Assembly (NCBI GenBank): GCA_020536535.1
Contig: JAHLWZ010000714.1
Span: 1 to 64,000, forward strand
DNA length: 64,000 nt
Reading direction: 5' to 3'
Source of the DNA: Pelomyxa schiedti
Lineage: Eukaryota; Protista; Evosea
Shown: positions 10,726-38,200 of the stretch, one piece after another
Numbering within the stretch: position 1 is the first letter of the stretch
How the letters are laid out: each line of letters begins with the position of its first letter
Program-made: the position numbers and the translations under genes
Notes under the pieces: generated by a model
Databases searched by the model: none
Told to the model about the DNA's origin: nothing
The model's input: the letters and a program-made list of their open reading frames with translations, nothing else

Positions 10726-10980
10726 GGGTTGATGCTGCAAGTGCAGCACCTCGGGATTCCCACTCAGCCCCGTTTTCCTGTGACCGCCCTCAGCGCCCGC
10801 TTTTGAATGTTCCGTTTCCGGCCTCTTCCGATGCGCAGCGTCATTACACGAACCACGGTGCTAAGGCTGCCCCTGGCAACGTTGTTCACTGAAGGCTTCC
10901 TAGGGCGCGGCTGTAAACGCAGCAAATCCCTCAATGCCACCTCCACATCACCAACCCGAAGAAACACCAGCCAAACGCCC
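10726..10980 (-). ncRNA. Signal recognition particle RNA (7SL-like), ~255 nt
   Basis: Minus strand has the helix-8-like GAAGAGGCCG-GAAA-CGGAACAUUC-AAAA (10828-10801). Long rod pairings GGGUUGGUG/CAUCAACCC, GUGGCAUU/GGUGCUGC, GGGAUUU/GAAUCCC, CCUUCAGUG/CGCUGAGGG and CGCU/AGCG. Ends in a U-run. Confidence 0.8.
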
Positions 10981-11051
10981 GAGATTAAAGCAAAAAAAAA
11001 TCCGCTGCAGTACTTATGGGAAGCGGGTTTTTTTGAATGAGTTGCCGGCTT

Positions 11052-23288: not shown

Positions 23289-25589
23289 CTAGGGAAGAGC
23301 TTTCGCTTTCCAATTCACTCTCCTCCCTTGGTTCTTTTGCTGCAGTCCAGTTAGGTTATTATTAATTTCCTGGTTTTGGTGTAACGTACGAGGCCGAGGT
23401 GCATAGCCAAAAATCAAAAGTCCCACATACGAGTTGTAAAGGGTATAAAAGAGTACAAGACCAACAGCTGGGTAGCTGAGATTAGCAGTTTGAAAGAAGA
23501 TAGCAGGATAACCTGTGCTTCCTAAGGCTACAAACGTTCCAGTAAATATACTGGCTATGGAGAAACATAGTACAACAAATGTGGGAAGAACCAAGTAAAG
23601 ATATCTGTTTAATTCAGATTTACTTCGTTTCGGTGGAAAAAGAAAACCTTTTAAGGAGAAGCATATTGTGACGCAGGTCTTTAATGGAAATGATTGATAC
23701 AACTCCCAGCCATAGAACAATTCCGAAAAAAAGTATGATTGTTATCACAAAGAGGACCTGAAGATACATAACAGATAGTCAAAACAGTATATCATCTACC
23801 ATTACACCAGCAATATCAAAGGAAATTCCATAAACGGGATCATTTTCAGCAGCTACTCTAGAATGAAAAGCTTAGTGGGCTAATGTGGAGTTGGTGCTAC
23901 ATTTGCCAAATGTACATTCCCAGTCCAGATGCCAGGAAACACAGAACGAGTCCAATCTACTTCCCAAGTAAGGTTGGCCATCGCAAATATGTTATAAAAC
24001 ACCTTTATTGCTGGCCCAAGGCCGAAATCAAGGCTCACCTCTGATTTCTAAAATTGCGTGAAAGAGGAAGGTGACTATTATAGGTTAACTTGCTTTACTC
24101 TATCGCAGCAAAAAAGCCAGAAGAGGCACAGAAGAGATAAAAATGACTAGATAACTCGTGAGTGAAAGCTATGAATTAGAACACAGAAAGTGTACTATTT
24201 TCACAAAGGCGTTCCAAAAAGTAAAAACATTTTTGGTGGGAAACCACTTGAGGGTATAAAAAGGATCTGAGTGATGTGAATTCATTCAAGGACAAATGTT
24301 AATGTACTGTTGTAGAATATCAGGCCAAATTGAAGAATAACAATGAATCTTGCCATGTTTATTTATTAGAAGACTGAAACCTTCATTTACTTTATTCTAT
24401 ATTTGAAATAAGTTGCTACTTCTGTTCTAATGTCCATAGTCTCAGAGGAACAGACCGAATGACAAAAATAAGAACAGTAAAAACAATGCAGGAGCCAGCA
24501 ATGAAAAATATGGTGATAGATATCTCAAAGTCACTGAAAGTTGTAGTCCCTGTTTTAAACTAAAAAAATCCACAATCGTCTGAGTATCTATGGGGAAGAA
24601 ACCTCAAACTTCACATCTCCAAGGAAGGAAGCTTCTGACTTATCCGCATCAGGGAGCTGGACACTCACAGCCCAAGAAGGGTGTTCAATTGGAGACTAAG
24701 AACAGGTTGTGTAAGAGTCAAATAGAGTTGAAGCAAATAAAAAAACCTTGAATATAAGAAGGATGGGTAGGCATTCCCCATCTATACTGCCCTAATGGTG
24801 AAAAGTCACTTCAGGGAACTCGCTTTCTTTAGAGAAGGCAAGATAATGCTACAAACTGATTCATATTTGACTGTACATTCGTGAACATCGTTCTGCACTT
24901 CAGTAGACCAACTGGTACCATCTCGAGAATACGACATGTTCAAAGACACTTGAATGTTAACAGTCCGGTCCCTCCCTAGAAAAAAGATGTGCAATTTCGA
25001 TAGAGGTGAGAAAATTACCATCACTGTAGAATTTGTTATAAGCCGTCAGGCTAAGACTCCAAAATCTGTTTAGAGTCTCCAACTGAGTAAAGTTCTGATT
25101 CCACACTGTGTTTGGCTGTGATTTTACGTTAAAGCATTGAAGGAGAAAGTTTTGGGTCACCTCCGTTAAGTCAACTCCAACACAATCATTAGACCATACG
25201 TGTGAACCATCAGGACACCCGTAGGCATACCACACTGTACTCTCAAAAGGCGTAGGGCCTAGCCAATAGTTAAATAACCAAACTGCAACCAAACCAACGA
25301 GAGCAACATAGAACCAAACCAATAAAAAAAAAAAAAACGAAGATAACAAGAAACGGCTAGAAATACCAAGTAAGCCAAGTAGCATTGCCGCAGTGAGGCC
25401 GCACGCCCAACACAAAGCGGCAGCGAGCAGAGTGCGAACTTTGTATTTGTCCAATCTCAACCGCACCGAGAAATCTTCCCCAACGTCAAGATCTGGATCT
25501 CCTCCTTCCGTGGACACCACACTGTCGTCATTCGCGGTCTGTCGCTGTTGGTTGTGCCAGCCCGGCTTCCAGCTCCATGATTGTCCCAT
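23289..25589 (-). CDS. TMEM181: TMEM181/Wntless-like multi-pass membrane protein
   Basis: RLRLDK..LLGLLGP, FSDFEI..LRLWTLEQK..VSVLL, SFLSLLCLFWLF, ENDPVY, LFYTLYNSYVGLLIFGYAP follow the TMEM181 motif order. Confidence 0.7.
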
Positions 25590-25911
25590 TCCGCGATTTT
25601 CTTTTTCGAACGATTTCTGCACGTAAGATTCTTAGATGCTCTCCCGATCGCCAGATAAAATTGAAAAATATTCTTCTTGTTGTTTTGTTCCCACAATGAG
25701 AGGGTGCTAGGGTACGAGGGTCAACGAAACAGCACCTTGTTGCGTGTGTTTGGCCTGGAACCCACAGTATAAATGGGTTGATGCTTGTGTGGGCTGTTGT
25801 AAGTCATTCTTGCTAGCAGTCGTAGGATTGGTTGGTGAGTCCCGTTTTTTTTTTTTTGCTGTTGGTGTTGCCGGTGTTGCTTTGTGGTGGTATTGGAGAC
25901 TGCATTGAGCG

Positions 25912-25978
25912 CCTTGGTATCAACAACTCCCAAATTGCACTTGTGCGTTTCACTGGAAGCCGTATCACATCATCAAGG
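25912..25978 (-). promoter_or_regulatory. SECIS element (type II) in the 3'UTR
   Basis: CCUUG-augau-GUGAU-ACGGCUUCCAG-ug-AAA-c-GCAC-aa-GUGC-aau-UUGGGAGUUGU-UGAU-ac-CAAGG: helix I, UGAN/NGAN quartet, 11-bp helix II, apical AAA and mini-stem. Confidence 0.85.
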
Positions 25979-26093
25979 TGCTACTGTGTGCATTCTACAA
26001 CAGGGCACTGTGCAGGAAAGATATTTACAGGTTCCTTGTGTATTGTTACTTGGTGGGAAGGAAAGTGTTCCTTGTAGTACCTGCACTACTGGT

Positions 26094-26841
26094 CTAAGAT
26101 CAGGTTCCTGTTCTCTTAATCCTCGCAGGGCGGTACCTGCTAAATTGTCAAACTCGGACTGTTTCTCTAAGAGGTGCTTACCTCCCGGTATCAGAAAATC
26201 CTGACAGATGCCCAGTCGTCCCACAAGATTCATTGTTATGGGTGTCTTGCGAACTAGGGTGAGTACTTTGGCTGCCATTGTTATTCCCACTCTGCCCATC
26301 AGTACTATCCCAAGGAGTATTGTGCCAGGCTGGCGCCGTATCACGGAGAGACGCCTCCAGTTTTGCTAGTTTCTTCTCCCTTTCACGAGCAGCGGATTCT
26401 TCTGCCGCTTCTATGGATTTGGTTGCAAATTGTTCCTGCTGTCGTGACCTTATTTCTTCAACTTCTTCCCGCGGTGGTAAAGGAGGCTCGTCTGTGCTAG
26501 CGGTCGTCTGCCTGGGTTTGTTCAAAGCCTCCATAATATCGACTCTGTTCCTCTGTCTTCATTCTCATTACTATTACCATTGGAAAAGGTGACAACACAG
26601 TAATGGCGAAAACTTGACAAAAGAAAAAAAAAAAAAAAAAAAACAAGTACGTTCTACGTTGCCACCATGCCGTCCTCGAAAGCACGTAAGCGAGCATGGC
26701 ACCCCCGAGAAACAAACCCCAAAACACTATGGGCTTTTTTACGTGCAACATCACGAACACCCCAAGTGCTTGTCGCACCGGATCTAGTCCCACCTGTACG
26801 TCATCACCCACTCCCGGCTCCCCGCCTCCCCTGCCACTCAT
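26094..26841 (-). CDS. SELENOS: Selenoprotein S-like protein (Sec penultimate)
   Basis: 3 exons encoding an N-terminal TM (PIVFWGLFLGGAMLAYVL), a coiled coil (EEIRSRQQEQF..EREKKLAKLE) and a disordered tail. After the 45-nt intron (26181-26137) it reads RYRPARIKRTGT-UGA(26102-26100)-S-UAG. SECIS lies downstream. Confidence 0.8.
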
Positions 26842-31983: not shown

Positions 31984-32104
31984 TTTTCGCTCGCTGGGTA
32001 TACCAACCAAAGGAAGAAGAAAAGAGATTTAATGTGACAACACCAAAAGTTTTTTTTTTGGGGGGTGGTGAGTTACTTTACCACCAATTTATAAATCCAT
32101 TCTT

Positions 32105-34256
32105 TTACAATGCACAAACCTTTTTCGGAGTTAGGGTAATTTTGTACAATAGGGAATAGGGTACCAGGCTTGATGCAACCATGTTGACACTCTGACCAGT
32201 CTCCTTTGTCTTGGTGGTCTCCTTCACAGTCGTGCCCTCAGGTTTTTTGGTATCTCCTGAGCCATCCTCAGGTTCACATTCATATGCACAGTTGAAGTCA
32301 TAATCGTATTCATAATCATAGTCATCCCCGAAAAGCTCCATTCTCTGCTTTGCTTCCCTCCAAGCAGCAGCAGCCTCCAATACAGCTGCACGTGCACGTT
32401 GAAGGTCTTCAACAGTCTGAACATCATCAAAGAAATGGAGGGTTCGGCGCCATTTTCTCACTTGTCCATCCCAGCTTCTCTGTGGTACAAATGGTGGGTT
32501 AAATGTGAAATTGAGACCTCCCGTTTCTCAACCTTGGAGCATTTCTGGAATTTGTTTGGAATAACTGGGTCACCACGCTGTGTTCTTGTTGCAAGTCTGG
32601 TGTAGTTTTGGTATCCCACAGTTTCAATACCATAGTCAATTTGTTTCTGTCTAGCAGCCAGCCTGGCTTCATCCGTTTCTATTGAAGGTGAGAGGGGTTC
32701 CGAGAAAATTTGAAAGGATACCAACGCCAGGTGATATCACTGGGTTTCCAAACAAAAACACTCCAGATCGCACAGGTGTGTTACTGCCAAGAATTGGGTG
32801 CTCCTTTGTTGGAGGAGTCATAAAGAGCACGGGGAGTGCAGTAGGTTGTGAAGGGGACTTAGGGGTCGGCGGTACAAAAGGTATTATTGGAGATAGTGGT
32901 GCCATTGGAATTGGTGAGCATAACGGCCCACCACTAAACGATGTGTGGTTGACCGGAGTCCGGAACCCTGGGGTCAAAACGGGAAGTATTGGCAGGGATT
33001 TCGAGAGAAGAGGAACGTTATTCGCTGCTTCAATCTAATGAAGATGTTTAGCAAACCAAATGTCTGGCAAAATAACATACCATAGCAGAGATTTCTTGCA
33101 GCACTTGTCGATTGAGGCCTGGTGGAGCAAACTGGTGGTTCTAAGAAAGTATGTCAGTTCTATGAAAAAGAATTTATCAATTTTTACACACAGCTCTCAG
33201 GGAAAGCAAAAATGATCTCTCGTACACAAGACGTGCTTTGTCATTCTCAGAATCTCTCTCATGAACACTTGCAGGACAAAGCACTGTCTTGATGGGAGTG
33301 AACTCAGGAGTCGAGGGATTGAAAGGCTTTGCTGTTGGTCCGTCTGCTTGCTTAGCAGTACAATCAGAGACAAGGTTAGTCTCTTGTGCAGAGTCACCCA
33401 CAGAGGATTCCTCCAACTTCTTCATTTTAGATTGGAAGCTCTCTGACTGAATGGTCGGCGAAAAACTTCTTCCGCTCCAGGAAGAATTCCACGATTCTGT
33501 CCCAACTGGGGTTGTAGACATCGAAGTATTAGGTCTCGCTTTGAGAGGTGTCGAGACAGGTGTCGGCAATAGTGAGATCTTGGGCACGCCACAGTTGATA
33601 GAATCCGATCTCGTAGCGGCGACGCCGGGCAAAGCCGGATCCGCGTTCTCGTCAATTGCAGTCGGCTTTGGGGTCACAGAGGAGAGGAGACAAGCGCCTT
33701 TTGCGCTGCCATTGTTGAGATATGTCATCGTAGTAGTAGTCGTAGTCGTAGTAGTAATCGTCTTCGTAGGCGTGGCATCAGTGTTGCAAGATTTTCTTGT
33801 GATTGAGATCACAGTCGGTGAGGAGGAGGAAGAGGGCGAAGGAGAGGGCAAGCTAATATTAGCTCCCTGAGCAGTTGCATGTCCGGGGAATTGAGATGCC
33901 AGTGCCACAGGCGCCGACGTCGGGGTGTTGCTATTATTAGTACGGCCTTTATTATTTGTTGCTGAGGCGGTGGCATTTGACACCATTTGCGTGCCTGAGA
34001 TCTTGGATGAAGACGATGCCAGAGACGGCTTGCGGATCTGCACAGTGTCATTTACGAAGGCGGAAGGAGTGCCTGTTGCCGTTGCTACTGCCGCTACCGC
34101 TGCTGTTGTTCCTGTTGCACTATTAATAATACTGGCTGGCAGTGCTGGTATTGTCACGACTGGCTTTGTCGTCGCCGACTTGAGCGGCAGATCCGCGGCC
34201 CCTTTCCTCTTGTTGACGTTGCTGGAGAGAACGCCCAGTGCTACGCGAGAAGTCAT
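32105..34256 (-). CDS. SLBP: Histone mRNA stem-loop binding protein with extended N-terminus
   Basis: ETDEARLAARQKQIDYG..GYQNY..DPVIPNKFQKCSK|RSWDGQVRKWRRTLHFFD is the SLBP RNA-binding domain. Confidence 0.88.
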
Positions 34257-35219
34257 TTCCGCGAGTCAGAGACGTACGTTTCGTTGCCTGCTGCGTGTGT
34301 TGGGTGTGTCGGTTTATGTGCCGCACTCGAGTGCTTGTTGGTTTGCTGGTGTTGGTACCAACCAAGCCTTGTGTGGGGGTGCGCGCGTGGTTTGCGTTTG
34401 TTGTTGGTGTTGCTCCTGCTAATTAGAAAAAGAAAAAAAAAAGGAAGCAGATTCGGCCATTATAAAGCTCGTCGGGGCTTTCTATTTTTTGGACTTTTGA
34501 CTGTTGTGAATTCTACCTCACCAAAAAGTGCCGGAAATACATGCGGACCGAGATACGGCCCCTGGTTCCCTCAGTCTGGTCACGTTTTTCCCTATGACAC
34601 AAAAGTGAAGATGCCCACTCTCCGTAGGGATTTCGCCTTCCACTTTTCTGTGATGAGAGACTGAGCCCCTAAGTAACTGTTGCACGGTTCATTGTCCTGG
34701 TTGGGGGAACCCGATTTTCAAAAATAATTCTTGGGAAGAAAAAGCCTCCTTACAAGTGCCTGAGGGGGACGTCGAGAATCTGTGGGATGAATCAACAATA
34801 TGTTTGCTCGTTCCGACAACGCTGTCTGGTGACTGAACCTCAACAGCAAATTTTTTCCAGCCTGTCTAAAAGAGGGAAACCTGCAACTCACCTGCTCCTA
34901 CTGGCTTTTTCCTTCTTTCATCACTGTTGGGATGGAAAGGAAGATGTTGGGGTCCTCCTCCTCCTTGACCCTGTCAATAGTTTTGTTATTCGGCTCACAG
35001 CCTTCTCATCCTGTATTCGGATTCCTTCTTTGGCAAAGGTGGATCTAACTTGAGCGAGGAAAACTGCTAAATCTGAAACCCTTATCTGTGCATCTTTGTT
35101 ACAATGCTCAGGAAGGCGGTACAAAGGCTAGAACACCTCAAAAACAAAAAACAAACCAAAAAATAAAGTAAACAACAAACCAACCTTAATTTATTGTGGC
35201 AGGCAGACGAGCGAACGAA

Positions 35220-38200
35220 ATGTCACGGCGTCTTATAATATTTTTCACCTACCTGCTCACAGTTTGCGGGTCCATTGCACCATTCACTGAGGATTGTACT
35301 TCCAGCTTCACGGCGGCCAAATGGAGGTTTCTCTCATGCACTGTGGAATTTTAGTTCCTTTCGTTTTCCTTGTTTTATTGTGGTTTGTTGCCAGTCAAGG
35401 CTTTCTGTGTTGGTATCTCACCAAATACACAGTGGGTGGTCACATTTGTACATTGGAGGCTACGAGAGCAGATGCGGGGACTCGCCCTCAGGATCGGCAT
35501 GTTATTTCCAAGGAGGAGGCGGCGACCGCTACATATCTTCCCAAGTAGTTGATGTCTCCACCTATGACGTCATGAGAATCAGATTCAATCTCCGCGTTGG
35601 AGACAGCAGCGTGAGATTCGCGTGGACTTGCAGCGGGCCCGATTGGACCAGCAATTACCCACAGCTCGAAGCCCAGCGTGATTCCTCAGGCTGGAGTGTC
35701 ATCGACAGCTACCCCAGAATGGGAAGCTGGGGAAGCTATGACTATTCTGTAAATGTGGGAACCACCTCAGGAATGGAGTTCAGATGGTACCAGCACGGCG
35801 GATCGGACTTAACAATCGACTATGCCCTATGGGGAGTCGATTCAATATGGGTTCAGGGAGTAAATTGTGTGCTGCCCCTTCTTGTCATCATATTTCGTTT
35901 TCTTTTTAGTTTTAGTGTTAAATTTTCGCGTTTACTGACTGAGATGTGTAAAAAGGGCCCGTTGTATCCAGTGTGACAAGACCTCCAACGACTGGGGGCA
36001 GTGTCACTATCACTGGAAACTATTACTTTAGTGGTTGTACAGCAACTGTTGGTGGGGCTGCTTGTACCAGTCCCGCGTATTTATCTGCAACGTCTATGAC
36101 TTGCGATGCACCAGTACGTTTTTTTTTTTTTTTTTTTTTTTGGGCAGTTATAACTTGGTTTCCTAATTTCCGTACGTAGGGTGGAACAGGTTCAGGACAT
36201 GAAATTAAAGTTACTTGTGATATCTATAGCAGTCTTGCCAATACCCTTTTCTCGTATGCTGGTAATGATACGTCTGTTTTTTTGCCTTGAAGATGACATT
36301 CTGTTGCAGATCCAACTATCTCTTCAGTTCCATCTATTGGCACTTCTGGGGGAACGACACAACTCCAGGTTATTGCCCTCTGGGTTTACCCTTATATCTG
36401 AATACCATTTGCTCCACATGCACAGGGAACAAACTTTGGGGGTGGTCCTCCCTCGCCCTACGAAATTACTGCTACCTTTGGTGGTGCAGCAGCAACTGTT
36501 ACCTGGGTTTCCCAGACAACTTTGACACTCACTATCCCCCCTGGCAGTGGCTATGCTTCAGTGCAAGTTACTGTTGATGGACTGACGAGCAATGTGTATA
36601 CATATGCTTACTCGGGTTCGTTAATTCGACTTATGTTATTTCACTTACTGGTTTGAATAGCTCCCTCCATTTCCTCAATCACCAATCCTTCAACAACTGG
36701 TGGACAAATTACAATCACTGGCGATAATTTTGGTCCTTCTGGAACCCTTGTATCTGTTCTTGTTGATGGAAAAGAATGCACCAATCCTTCAGTTGTTGCT
36801 CATACCCAAATGACTTGCACCGTTGAGCCTGGAGTGGGGACGGGACTCTCTGTCGTGGCAAATGTTCCTGCTTCCAGTGGACAGCAAGTTAGTGTGGCTA
36901 CGTTTTCCTATGAGGCTCCTCAAATATTCTCTTTTTCATCCCCAAGTACTGGCACCTTATCAACTCCGATAGAGGTTTGCAATATGGGAATACCTGACAC
37001 TTTATTCACTGGTTTTTTCACAGGGAGATAATTTTGGCCCAGGGGGTGCTTATCAACTCTATATCCTTTTTGATGGAATTCAACAAAACTGTGTTTGGGA
37101 ATCTCAGACATCTATGTGGTGCCCAGTACCAACTGCAACCAATATGGGTTAGTAGAGTTTTGTATTGAGTGCTTTGTGACTTTCTAAAGGTTCTCATTCT
37201 GTTGTACCTGTCATTGCAGGGAATACTGGAAGTTCTTTTGATTTTACTTATGATGGTTTGAAAAAAATTTCTTTGGTTGGTTCTCATTTTGGCTAGCACC
37301 TCAAATTACCTCGGTTTCTTCTATTTCTACAGTTGGCGGCCATATTACAATTACTGGACTGAACTTTGGTCCAACTGGAACACCTGTATCAGTAACAATT
37401 CAGGGACAGACGTGCTCTTCCCCAGTTGTAGTTTCGCATACCAGCTTAACTTGCGATTTTGGAACCGGCACAGGGGCTGACTTACCTGTCGTGGTGACAG
37501 TGGGAAGCAAGTCTGGTTCTGGATTGTTCTCATACCAACGTAAAGCCGTTTTTGTTTCTCTCAAAATCTAAGTTACTCTAGCACCTCGAATTTCTGCCAT
37601 AGAATCTCCGTCTACTGACGGTGCGGGCACTGTGACAATTACGGTAAGTTTGATATCCCCTTCGGGAGATCACTCATGCCTCAAAGGGCGAGAACTTTGG
37701 TCCTGGTGGAGCTTATCAAATTAATGTTATCTATGACACTGAGAGTACAGTTATTGCTGCAACTTGGCTCTCTGATTCTACTATTGCTGTACAGTTCCCT
37801 CCTGGGACTGGCTACCACTCCATATCTGTCTCTGTAAATGGTGTGGAAAGTGTGACCCCTTTTACGATGTCCTACCAAGGTACCCTCTTCAAAGGAAAGC
37901 TTCATTAATAACCCTCTAAAAAGCTCCTGTCATTTCATCTTCATCTAACGTTGAAACTACTGGGGGTTCTGTTACCATTTTTGGCAACAACTTTGGACCT
38001 CTTTTATCCACTGTCTCGGTCACTTTCAATGGAGTAGCTTGTTCTGAAGCATACGTGGTCCAAGCTCATGTACAGGTTTCTTGCAAGGCCAGTGCTGGCG
38101 TGGGAACAGGAATTCCAATTTTAATGACAGTGGATGGAGGGGTACAAGGCTCTGGCTTTGGCTCGTACAAAGGTACAAGGTTACGGCATATTCGTTTTCT

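Follow-up and report, generated by a model that had tools for sequence, protein, structure and literature searches.

We have identified in the genome of the anaerobic amoeba Pelomyxa schiedti a single-copy, expressed gene for a small single-pass membrane protein in which, very probably, an in-frame UGA is recoded via a GUGA-type type II SECIS. Decoding of this UGA (26102-26100) as selenocysteine (Sec), taken by itself, is likely. Four largely independent lines of evidence converge on the Sec reading: the UGA-Ser-UAG ending of the coding sequence, a rare SECIS candidate at a workable distance, built like the SECIS of SPS2, a bona fide selenoprotein gene in this genome, a Sec machinery that is complete enough, and a likeness to Selenoprotein S (SelS) that emerges from a query blind to the UGA. 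Recoding of UGA through SECIS is a textbook mechanism. What is new here is a candidate case in a group of amoebae without an earlier report, and a Sec end that public annotation misses. For Pelomyxa or Archamoebae, full-text literature searches returned no selenoprotein paper, and Sec use in anaerobic protists has been documented for a few metamonads (PMC6397501, PMC10703272).

Gene structure, transcription and splicing

Positions are those of the window, the whole 64,000-nt stretch of DNA analysed (positions 1 to 64,000 of contig JAHLWZ010000714.1). The SelS-like gene lies on the minus strand (26841..26094) and is spliced, with three coding exons. Exon 1 (26651..26841) opens with an ATG at 26841 and encodes the hydrophobic transmembrane (TM) segment PIVFWGLFLGGAMLAYVLS with a basic stretch after it. 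Intron 1 (26557..26650, minus strand; GT..AG, 94 nt) is a splice that fits the reading frame and is also used in the NCBI model Pelo_9089, a 'hypothetical protein' of P. schiedti in which the residues across the exon 1/exon 2 junction (...WWQRRT/QRNRVD...) are identical. The NCBI model starts at another in-frame ATG, at 26751, downstream of the one at 26841; counted from the annotated start, the protein has ~172 aa, and from the ATG at 26841 it has ~202 aa. The reading frame and the NCBI model are the basis for exon 1 and intron 1, the available RNA contig beginning downstream of them. A run of ~25 T in intron 1 (window 26611-26655) interrupts the Logan DNA contigs in two runs and is fragile in assembly.

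Exon 2 (26182..26556, minus strand) encodes a long, charged, coiled-coil-like helix and then a disordered tail rich in Ser, Gly, Asn and Thr, which carries the only Cys of the protein. It is followed by intron 2 (26137..26181, minus strand; GT..AG, 45 nt) and by exon 3 (26081..26136, minus strand), which finishes an Arg codon and then reads YRPARIKRTGT, TGA, TCT (Ser) and TAG, with 13 nt of 3'UTR. On the minus strand, the coding end runs from ...acc ggg ag through the intron to g tac cgc cct, and closes with aga aca gga acc TGA tct TAG, so that the spliced gene ends ...GRYRPARIKRTGT-UGA-UCU-UAG. The in-frame TGA (26100..26102, minus strand) is the proposed codon for a penultimate Sec, and the TAG (26094..26096, minus strand) is the proposed true stop as read from the sequence. 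After the UGA there is one codon only.

Pelo_9089 contains the same two coding introns and ends ...RTGT at the TGA. A first-pass annotation of this DNA, made from its letters, had predicted that gene finders would stop at the UGA, and the public model is truncated exactly there. The same annotation had read the spliced ending as UGA-S-UAG, and the same residues were read at 26102-26094. In Pelo_9089 numbering, Sec would be residue 171 of 172. The only Cys, C145, lies in the tail at a distance of 26 residues before the Sec position, where the first-pass annotation had given ~25.

Evidence for transcription was obtained from one 481-nt RNA contig, assembled from a single-cell RNA-seq run of the same study, which spans part of the locus. 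It aligns in three blocks, 26528-26179, 26133-26080 and 26033-25976, skipping 45 nt between the first two and 46 nt between the second and third. The first joint corresponds to intron 2 and the second to an intron in the 3'UTR (26035..26080, minus strand; GT..AG, 46 nt) that begins 13 nt past the TAG; both read CT..AC on the plus strand. The gene is transcribed, and it is spliced at intron 2 and at the 3'UTR intron. The removal of 26181-26137, on which the first-pass model of the ending had relied, is borne out by the joint in the RNA contig. At the TGA, the letters of three DNA runs agree with one another and with those of the RNA run, which excludes a sequencing error there.

The RNA contig extends at least 72 spliced nt beyond the TAG without poly(A). 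Its end at 25976 is made of Nextera adapter letters and falls at the foot of the SECIS candidate, the hairpin itself lying beyond the contig; there is no sign of polyadenylation before 25978. Removal of the 3'UTR intron changes the spacing of the elements. The distance from the UGA to the GUGA core is 131 nt in the genome and ~85 nt once this intron is removed, and the distance from the UGA to the base of the stem becomes ~70 nt in the mRNA, where the spacing criterion for a SECIS is at least ~50 nt from the UGA and a position within the mature mRNA. The first-pass figure of ~115 nt for the SECIS is therefore right as a genomic spacing and has to be replaced by ~70 nt for the mRNA, the additional 46-nt intron (26080-26035) having been overlooked. 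The 3'UTR intron also lies ~50 nt upstream of the SECIS stem. In mammals, a 50-nt exon-junction rule applies to premature stops. The intron is too near to both the UGA and the TAG for either to be marked as premature under this mammalian rule.

Protein architecture and relationship to Selenoprotein S

The structure of Pelo_9089 was predicted using AlphaFold2 without an alignment. The model contains a helix at residues 7-45, comprising the TM segment and its basic extension, and a second helix at residues 63-107 (pLDDT 82-91), with no structure at 108-170. The same order of parts, from an N-terminal TM helix through a basic stretch and a long charged helix to a disordered tail, is found in SelS/VIMP: besides its single TM helix, SelS has helix at residues 51-122, a C-terminal half that is disordered and Sec188 close to the end (PMC5725882). 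The two are also alike in size (~170-200 aa in Pelomyxa, 189 aa in SelS). Human SelS is a TM protein whose penultimate Sec188 is paired with Cys174 (PMC3628699), and the Pelomyxa protein would share with it a penultimate Sec whose UGA codon stands close to the mRNA end (PMC3628699), the lone Cys in the Pelomyxa tail being a possible selenenylsulfide partner.

Exons were queried unjoined, and for the whole protein Pelo_9089 was taken, which ends at the UGA, so that the feature search drew on neither the UGA nor the SECIS. In this ESM feature search, the top three clusters were all Selenoprotein S, from arthropods and chordates, with scores of 0.89, 0.88 and 0.87 and with 185, 178 and 178 shared features; with this tool, at least 170 shared features are typical of members of the same family and uncommon by chance, and a score below 0.9 is to be read as a lead only. 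An aromatic-Arg-Pro motif ~11-12 residues before Sec is presumably also common to both proteins.

The p97-binding VIM consensus of SelS is RX5AAX2R. By eye, the Pelomyxa helix ...IEAAEESAARER... (...SAARER) contains only the AAxxR half of the consensus.

It is possible, though not the reading we favor, that the gene encodes a true selenoprotein which is no relative of SelS, a lineage-specific orphan that converged on an anchor, a helix and a floppy tail with a C-terminal Sec. The searches for homologues speak for such an orphan. The Pfam Selenoprotein_S profile, PF06936, had no match at E<=10 in the exons or in Pelo_9089, where the only Pfam match was a sub-threshold one to DUF4381 over the TM helix. 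In a six-frame search of the genome, the sole PF06936 match was a low-complexity Lys/Glu stretch on contig C3600, which was rejected, and there was none at the locus. Using phmmer against 1.84 billion representatives, only the protein itself was recovered, and exon 2, as the query of a word-indexed search, returned only Pelo_9089 among 5.8 billion proteins. Likewise, no homologue beyond the protein itself was present among JGI metagenome loci, and no paralogue was found in the P. schiedti genome. The collections searched contained no homologue that could show conservation of the UGA, a Cys at that site, or covariation in the hairpin. The tail alone had no match in the ESM atlas, and a structure search of the same atlas was uninformative, yielding generic helical matches (TM <0.45); matches from a PDB sequence search were chance coiled-coil matches and were set aside.

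Two differences from SelS point in the same direction. The spacing between Cys and Sec is 26 in the Pelomyxa protein vs 14 in human SelS (PMC3628699), and the Pelomyxa protein ends U-S whereas SelS ends U-G. The Pelomyxa gene also differs from SelS in that its SECIS candidate is GUGA-type and an intron of the 3'UTR stands between the stop and the SECIS. The general layout with a C-terminal Sec is not peculiar to SelS: SelK (PF10961) likewise crosses the ER membrane once, has a cytosolic tail that is disordered, and carries Sec near the C-terminus. SelK is about half the size and is without the long helix. Matches to PF10961 in the genome were spurious, Gly/Arg-rich and in the wrong frame, with none at the locus. 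Against an orphan stand the three SelS clusters that head the list in the ESM feature search, their numbers of shared features lying within the same-family range, and the aromatic-Arg-Pro motif. That the gene represents a new lineage-specific selenoprotein family, in which the SelS/SelK design was reached independently in an anaerobic amoeba and the C-terminal Sec on a floppy, membrane-anchored tail serves for something other than oxidative ER quality control, we consider rather unlikely.

Within the selenoprotein reading that we prefer, the chances that the gene is a true, very divergent SelS orthologue and that it is an analogue are about even. The first-pass description of the gene as SelS-like agrees with its architecture and with the ESM feature search and finds no match in the Pfam SelS HMM. 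We regard 'SelS-like' as a fair label, and the gene as a possible member of the SelS family.

The SECIS candidate, the SPS2 gene and the Sec machinery

The criteria used for a SECIS were a helix I, an internal loop, an RUGA/GA quartet, a helix II of 9-12 bp, unpaired AA, and an apical loop or mini-helix. At 25983-25909 on the minus strand, all elements of a type II SECIS (helix I, internal loop, quartet, helix II, unpaired AA and mini-helix) were found, and the assignment is supported by the fold, by two scanners, and by a layout shared with the SPS2 SECIS of the same genome. Helix I consists of CCUUG/CAAGG (25978-25974 / 25916-25912), with two further pairs after an A.C mismatch, and leads into an asymmetric internal loop (5' AUGAUG, 3' AC). 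The quartet is formed by a 5' UGAU, preceded by a G (GUGA, 25968-25965), and a 3' UGAU (25922-25919). Helix II comprises 11 bp (25963-25953 / 25933-25923) with zero mismatches and four G.U pairs. Above it, a UGAAAC bulge carries the unpaired As (AAA, 25950-25948), and a mini-helix of 3 bp (25946-25944 / 25939-25937) is capped by a 4-nt loop. The predicted fold of the hairpin has an energy of -22.4 kcal/mol (z = -2.07).

The hairpin had originally been described as a fully pairable, 'canonical' type II SECIS with a GUGA core; the type II fold and the GUGA stand, and 'canonical' should read GUGA-type. In some green algae and in a sponge, SECIS cores are as a rule GUGA_AA (PMC3473315), and the candidate resembles such elements in its non-Watson-Crick quartet of 5' GUGA and 3' UGAU, its helix II (9-11 bp), its unpaired AAA and its type II mini-helix. 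The type of SECIS core tends to follow the species and not the gene family (PMC3473315), which fits the occurrence of two GUGA SECIS in one genome.

The rarity of the structure was estimated with a rule-based scanner of our own, which called for RUGA, a 3' GA, a minimum of 9 bp in helix II with no more than 1 mismatch, AA at 9-13 nt from the core and a minimum of 5 bp in helix I. This scanner returned 2 matches in 128 kb (the window on both strands), namely the candidate and a hairpin at 34924, as compared with 0.27 matches per 128 kb in dinucleotide shuffles, where a helix II of at least 11 bp occurred in 0/100 shuffles. The same scanner gave zero matches in ~80 kb of other loci of the same genome. 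By chance, the full SECIS geometry is expected ~0.001 times within the 470-nt stretch downstream. The candidate ranked at the top of the window with the rule-based scanner and also with a second, energy-based one, where it was the sole unbranched (single-rod) match. The parameters of both scanners were fixed with the candidate already seen, and these rarity numbers are indicative and not formal P-values.

The other match of the rule-based scanner, at window 34866-34924 (minus strand), is a GUGA...GA hairpin in which a run of purines is paired with one of pyrimidines. The TGA that goes with it terminates an ORF of 67 aa, no selenoprotein context was seen, and the match is probably due to chance. 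A 59-nt hairpin at window 35964-36022 (minus strand), with Watson-Crick GUGAC/GUCAC arms, scored 17.3 bits (E 0.013) with a covariance model built from the single candidate; it is without the apical part and was rejected as not SECIS-like. The covariance model itself was dropped, as it retrieved only the candidate in the genome and window and could not align the SPS2 SECIS.

The SPS2 gene served as a positive control. The selD profile matches two genes in the genome, on contigs C4 and C853. The gene on contig C4 (piece L012 ~2651-2440, minus strand) reads ...FKLTDYTRLKG-TGA-G, then an intron, then GCKIPQSEL, with the UGA at 2609-2607 and the intron splitting the gene directly after UGA-G. This UGA occupies the catalytic Sec/Cys site of selenophosphate synthetases, where the motif of SPS2 is G-U-G-C-K. 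The SECIS of the gene (~1052-970, minus strand), ~90 nt downstream of its last open frame, has a 5' GUGA and a 3' UGAU; helix II measures 9 bp and contains a single bulged G, the bulge reads UAUAAA, and the mini-helix is of 3 bp. It shares with our candidate the GUGA/UGAU cores, the AAA bulge, the 3-bp mini-helix and a spacing of 47 nt from the 5' core to the 3' GA; the helix sequences, in contrast, are unrelated. SPS2 on contig C4 is a bona fide selenoprotein gene, and its SECIS follows the design seen in the candidate. The selD gene on contig C853 encodes a fusion of a NifS-like cysteine desulfurase with SPS and has Cys at the catalytic site (...GMGCACKL). No SECIS was found in its 250-nt 3' region (L009 1386-1137). 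A NifS-SPS fusion is also known from Spironucleus (PMC6397501).

Rfam SECIS models gave nothing at the SelS-like locus (E<=10), in the window or in the whole 52-Mb genome. They miss the SPS2 SECIS too, so their silence at the candidate weighs little.

The check for Sec machinery proposed in the first-pass annotation turned up tRNA-Sec, SepSecS, two copies of the eEFSec fourth domain and the SPS2 gene with its in-frame UGA. The tRNA-Sec scored 67.9 bits against a cut-off of 47 bits, and ARAGORN likewise called it tRNA-SeC, with anticodon TCA. SepSecS is located on contig C80, where its exons span profile positions 28-388. The eEFSec-specific fourth domain scored above its cut-off twice on contig C87, both times adjoining GTPase-domain matches, and the two eEFSec-like genes (24077-26201 and 32079-34206, ~8 kb apart), each with a GTPase domain and eEFSec_4th, suggest that the Sec elongation factor has been duplicated in tandem. 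The bacterial selB model was rejected as evidence for eEFSec, being non-specific; its best loci were an eRF3/HBS1-like GTPase and EF-1alpha. With the KTI12/PSTK family profile, a single KTI12-family gene was found in the genome and no separate PSTK was seen. Rdx, GPx, Sep15/SelM and DSBA had no match in a six-frame Pfam search of the genome, a search that is weak on short exons.

That the TGA is a real stop, with a protein ending ...RTGT and a downstream hairpin that is unrelated or a chance 3'UTR structure, is very unlikely: the NCBI annotation ends at the TGA, Rfam is without a SECIS match, the searches gave no homologue to show conservation, the RNA contig ends at the foot of the hairpin, and a second stop two codons on has a prior probability of ~5% by itself, but the full SECIS geometry is hardly to be expected by chance so close downstream, the hairpin repeats the design of the SPS2 SECIS, the Sec-blind query most resembles a family defined by a penultimate Sec, and the genome contains Sec machinery.

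Proposed function, implications and other features of the window

Under the Sec reading, the UGA would be recoded by the 3'UTR SECIS, which would lie inside the mature mRNA, to give a protein ending ...YRPARIKRTGT-Sec-Ser. The protein is hypothesized to sit in the ER membrane in an N-out/C-in orientation, as SelS does. The Sec of the tail and the only Cys, 26 residues upstream, could form a selenenylsulfide, and the protein may act as a reductase or peroxidase. Cdc48/p97 is a possible partner, in ER quality control.

If this reading is true, a free-living anaerobic amoeba retains the whole Sec system and uses Sec in a SelS-like membrane protein, and the public proteome entry for that protein is truncated. 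The first-pass annotation had thought the terminus worth attention should the host be an anaerobic amoeba, which P. schiedti is. As a second GUGA-type SECIS from this genome, the candidate provides training material for selenoprotein finders on Amoebozoa. A very divergent SelS-like sequence would also bear on which features of SelS are essential, among them the Cys-Sec spacing, the terminal residue and the p97 motif.

Elsewhere in the window, an identical stretch of ~55 nt occurs at ~3218 and at ~52140 (both minus strand), 49 kb apart, and was recognized with the energy-based scanner as a repeated element. The window also contains an SRP RNA gene (10755-10994, minus strand), matched at full length by the Rfam Protozoa_SRP model with 72.2 bits against a cut-off of 65 bits.
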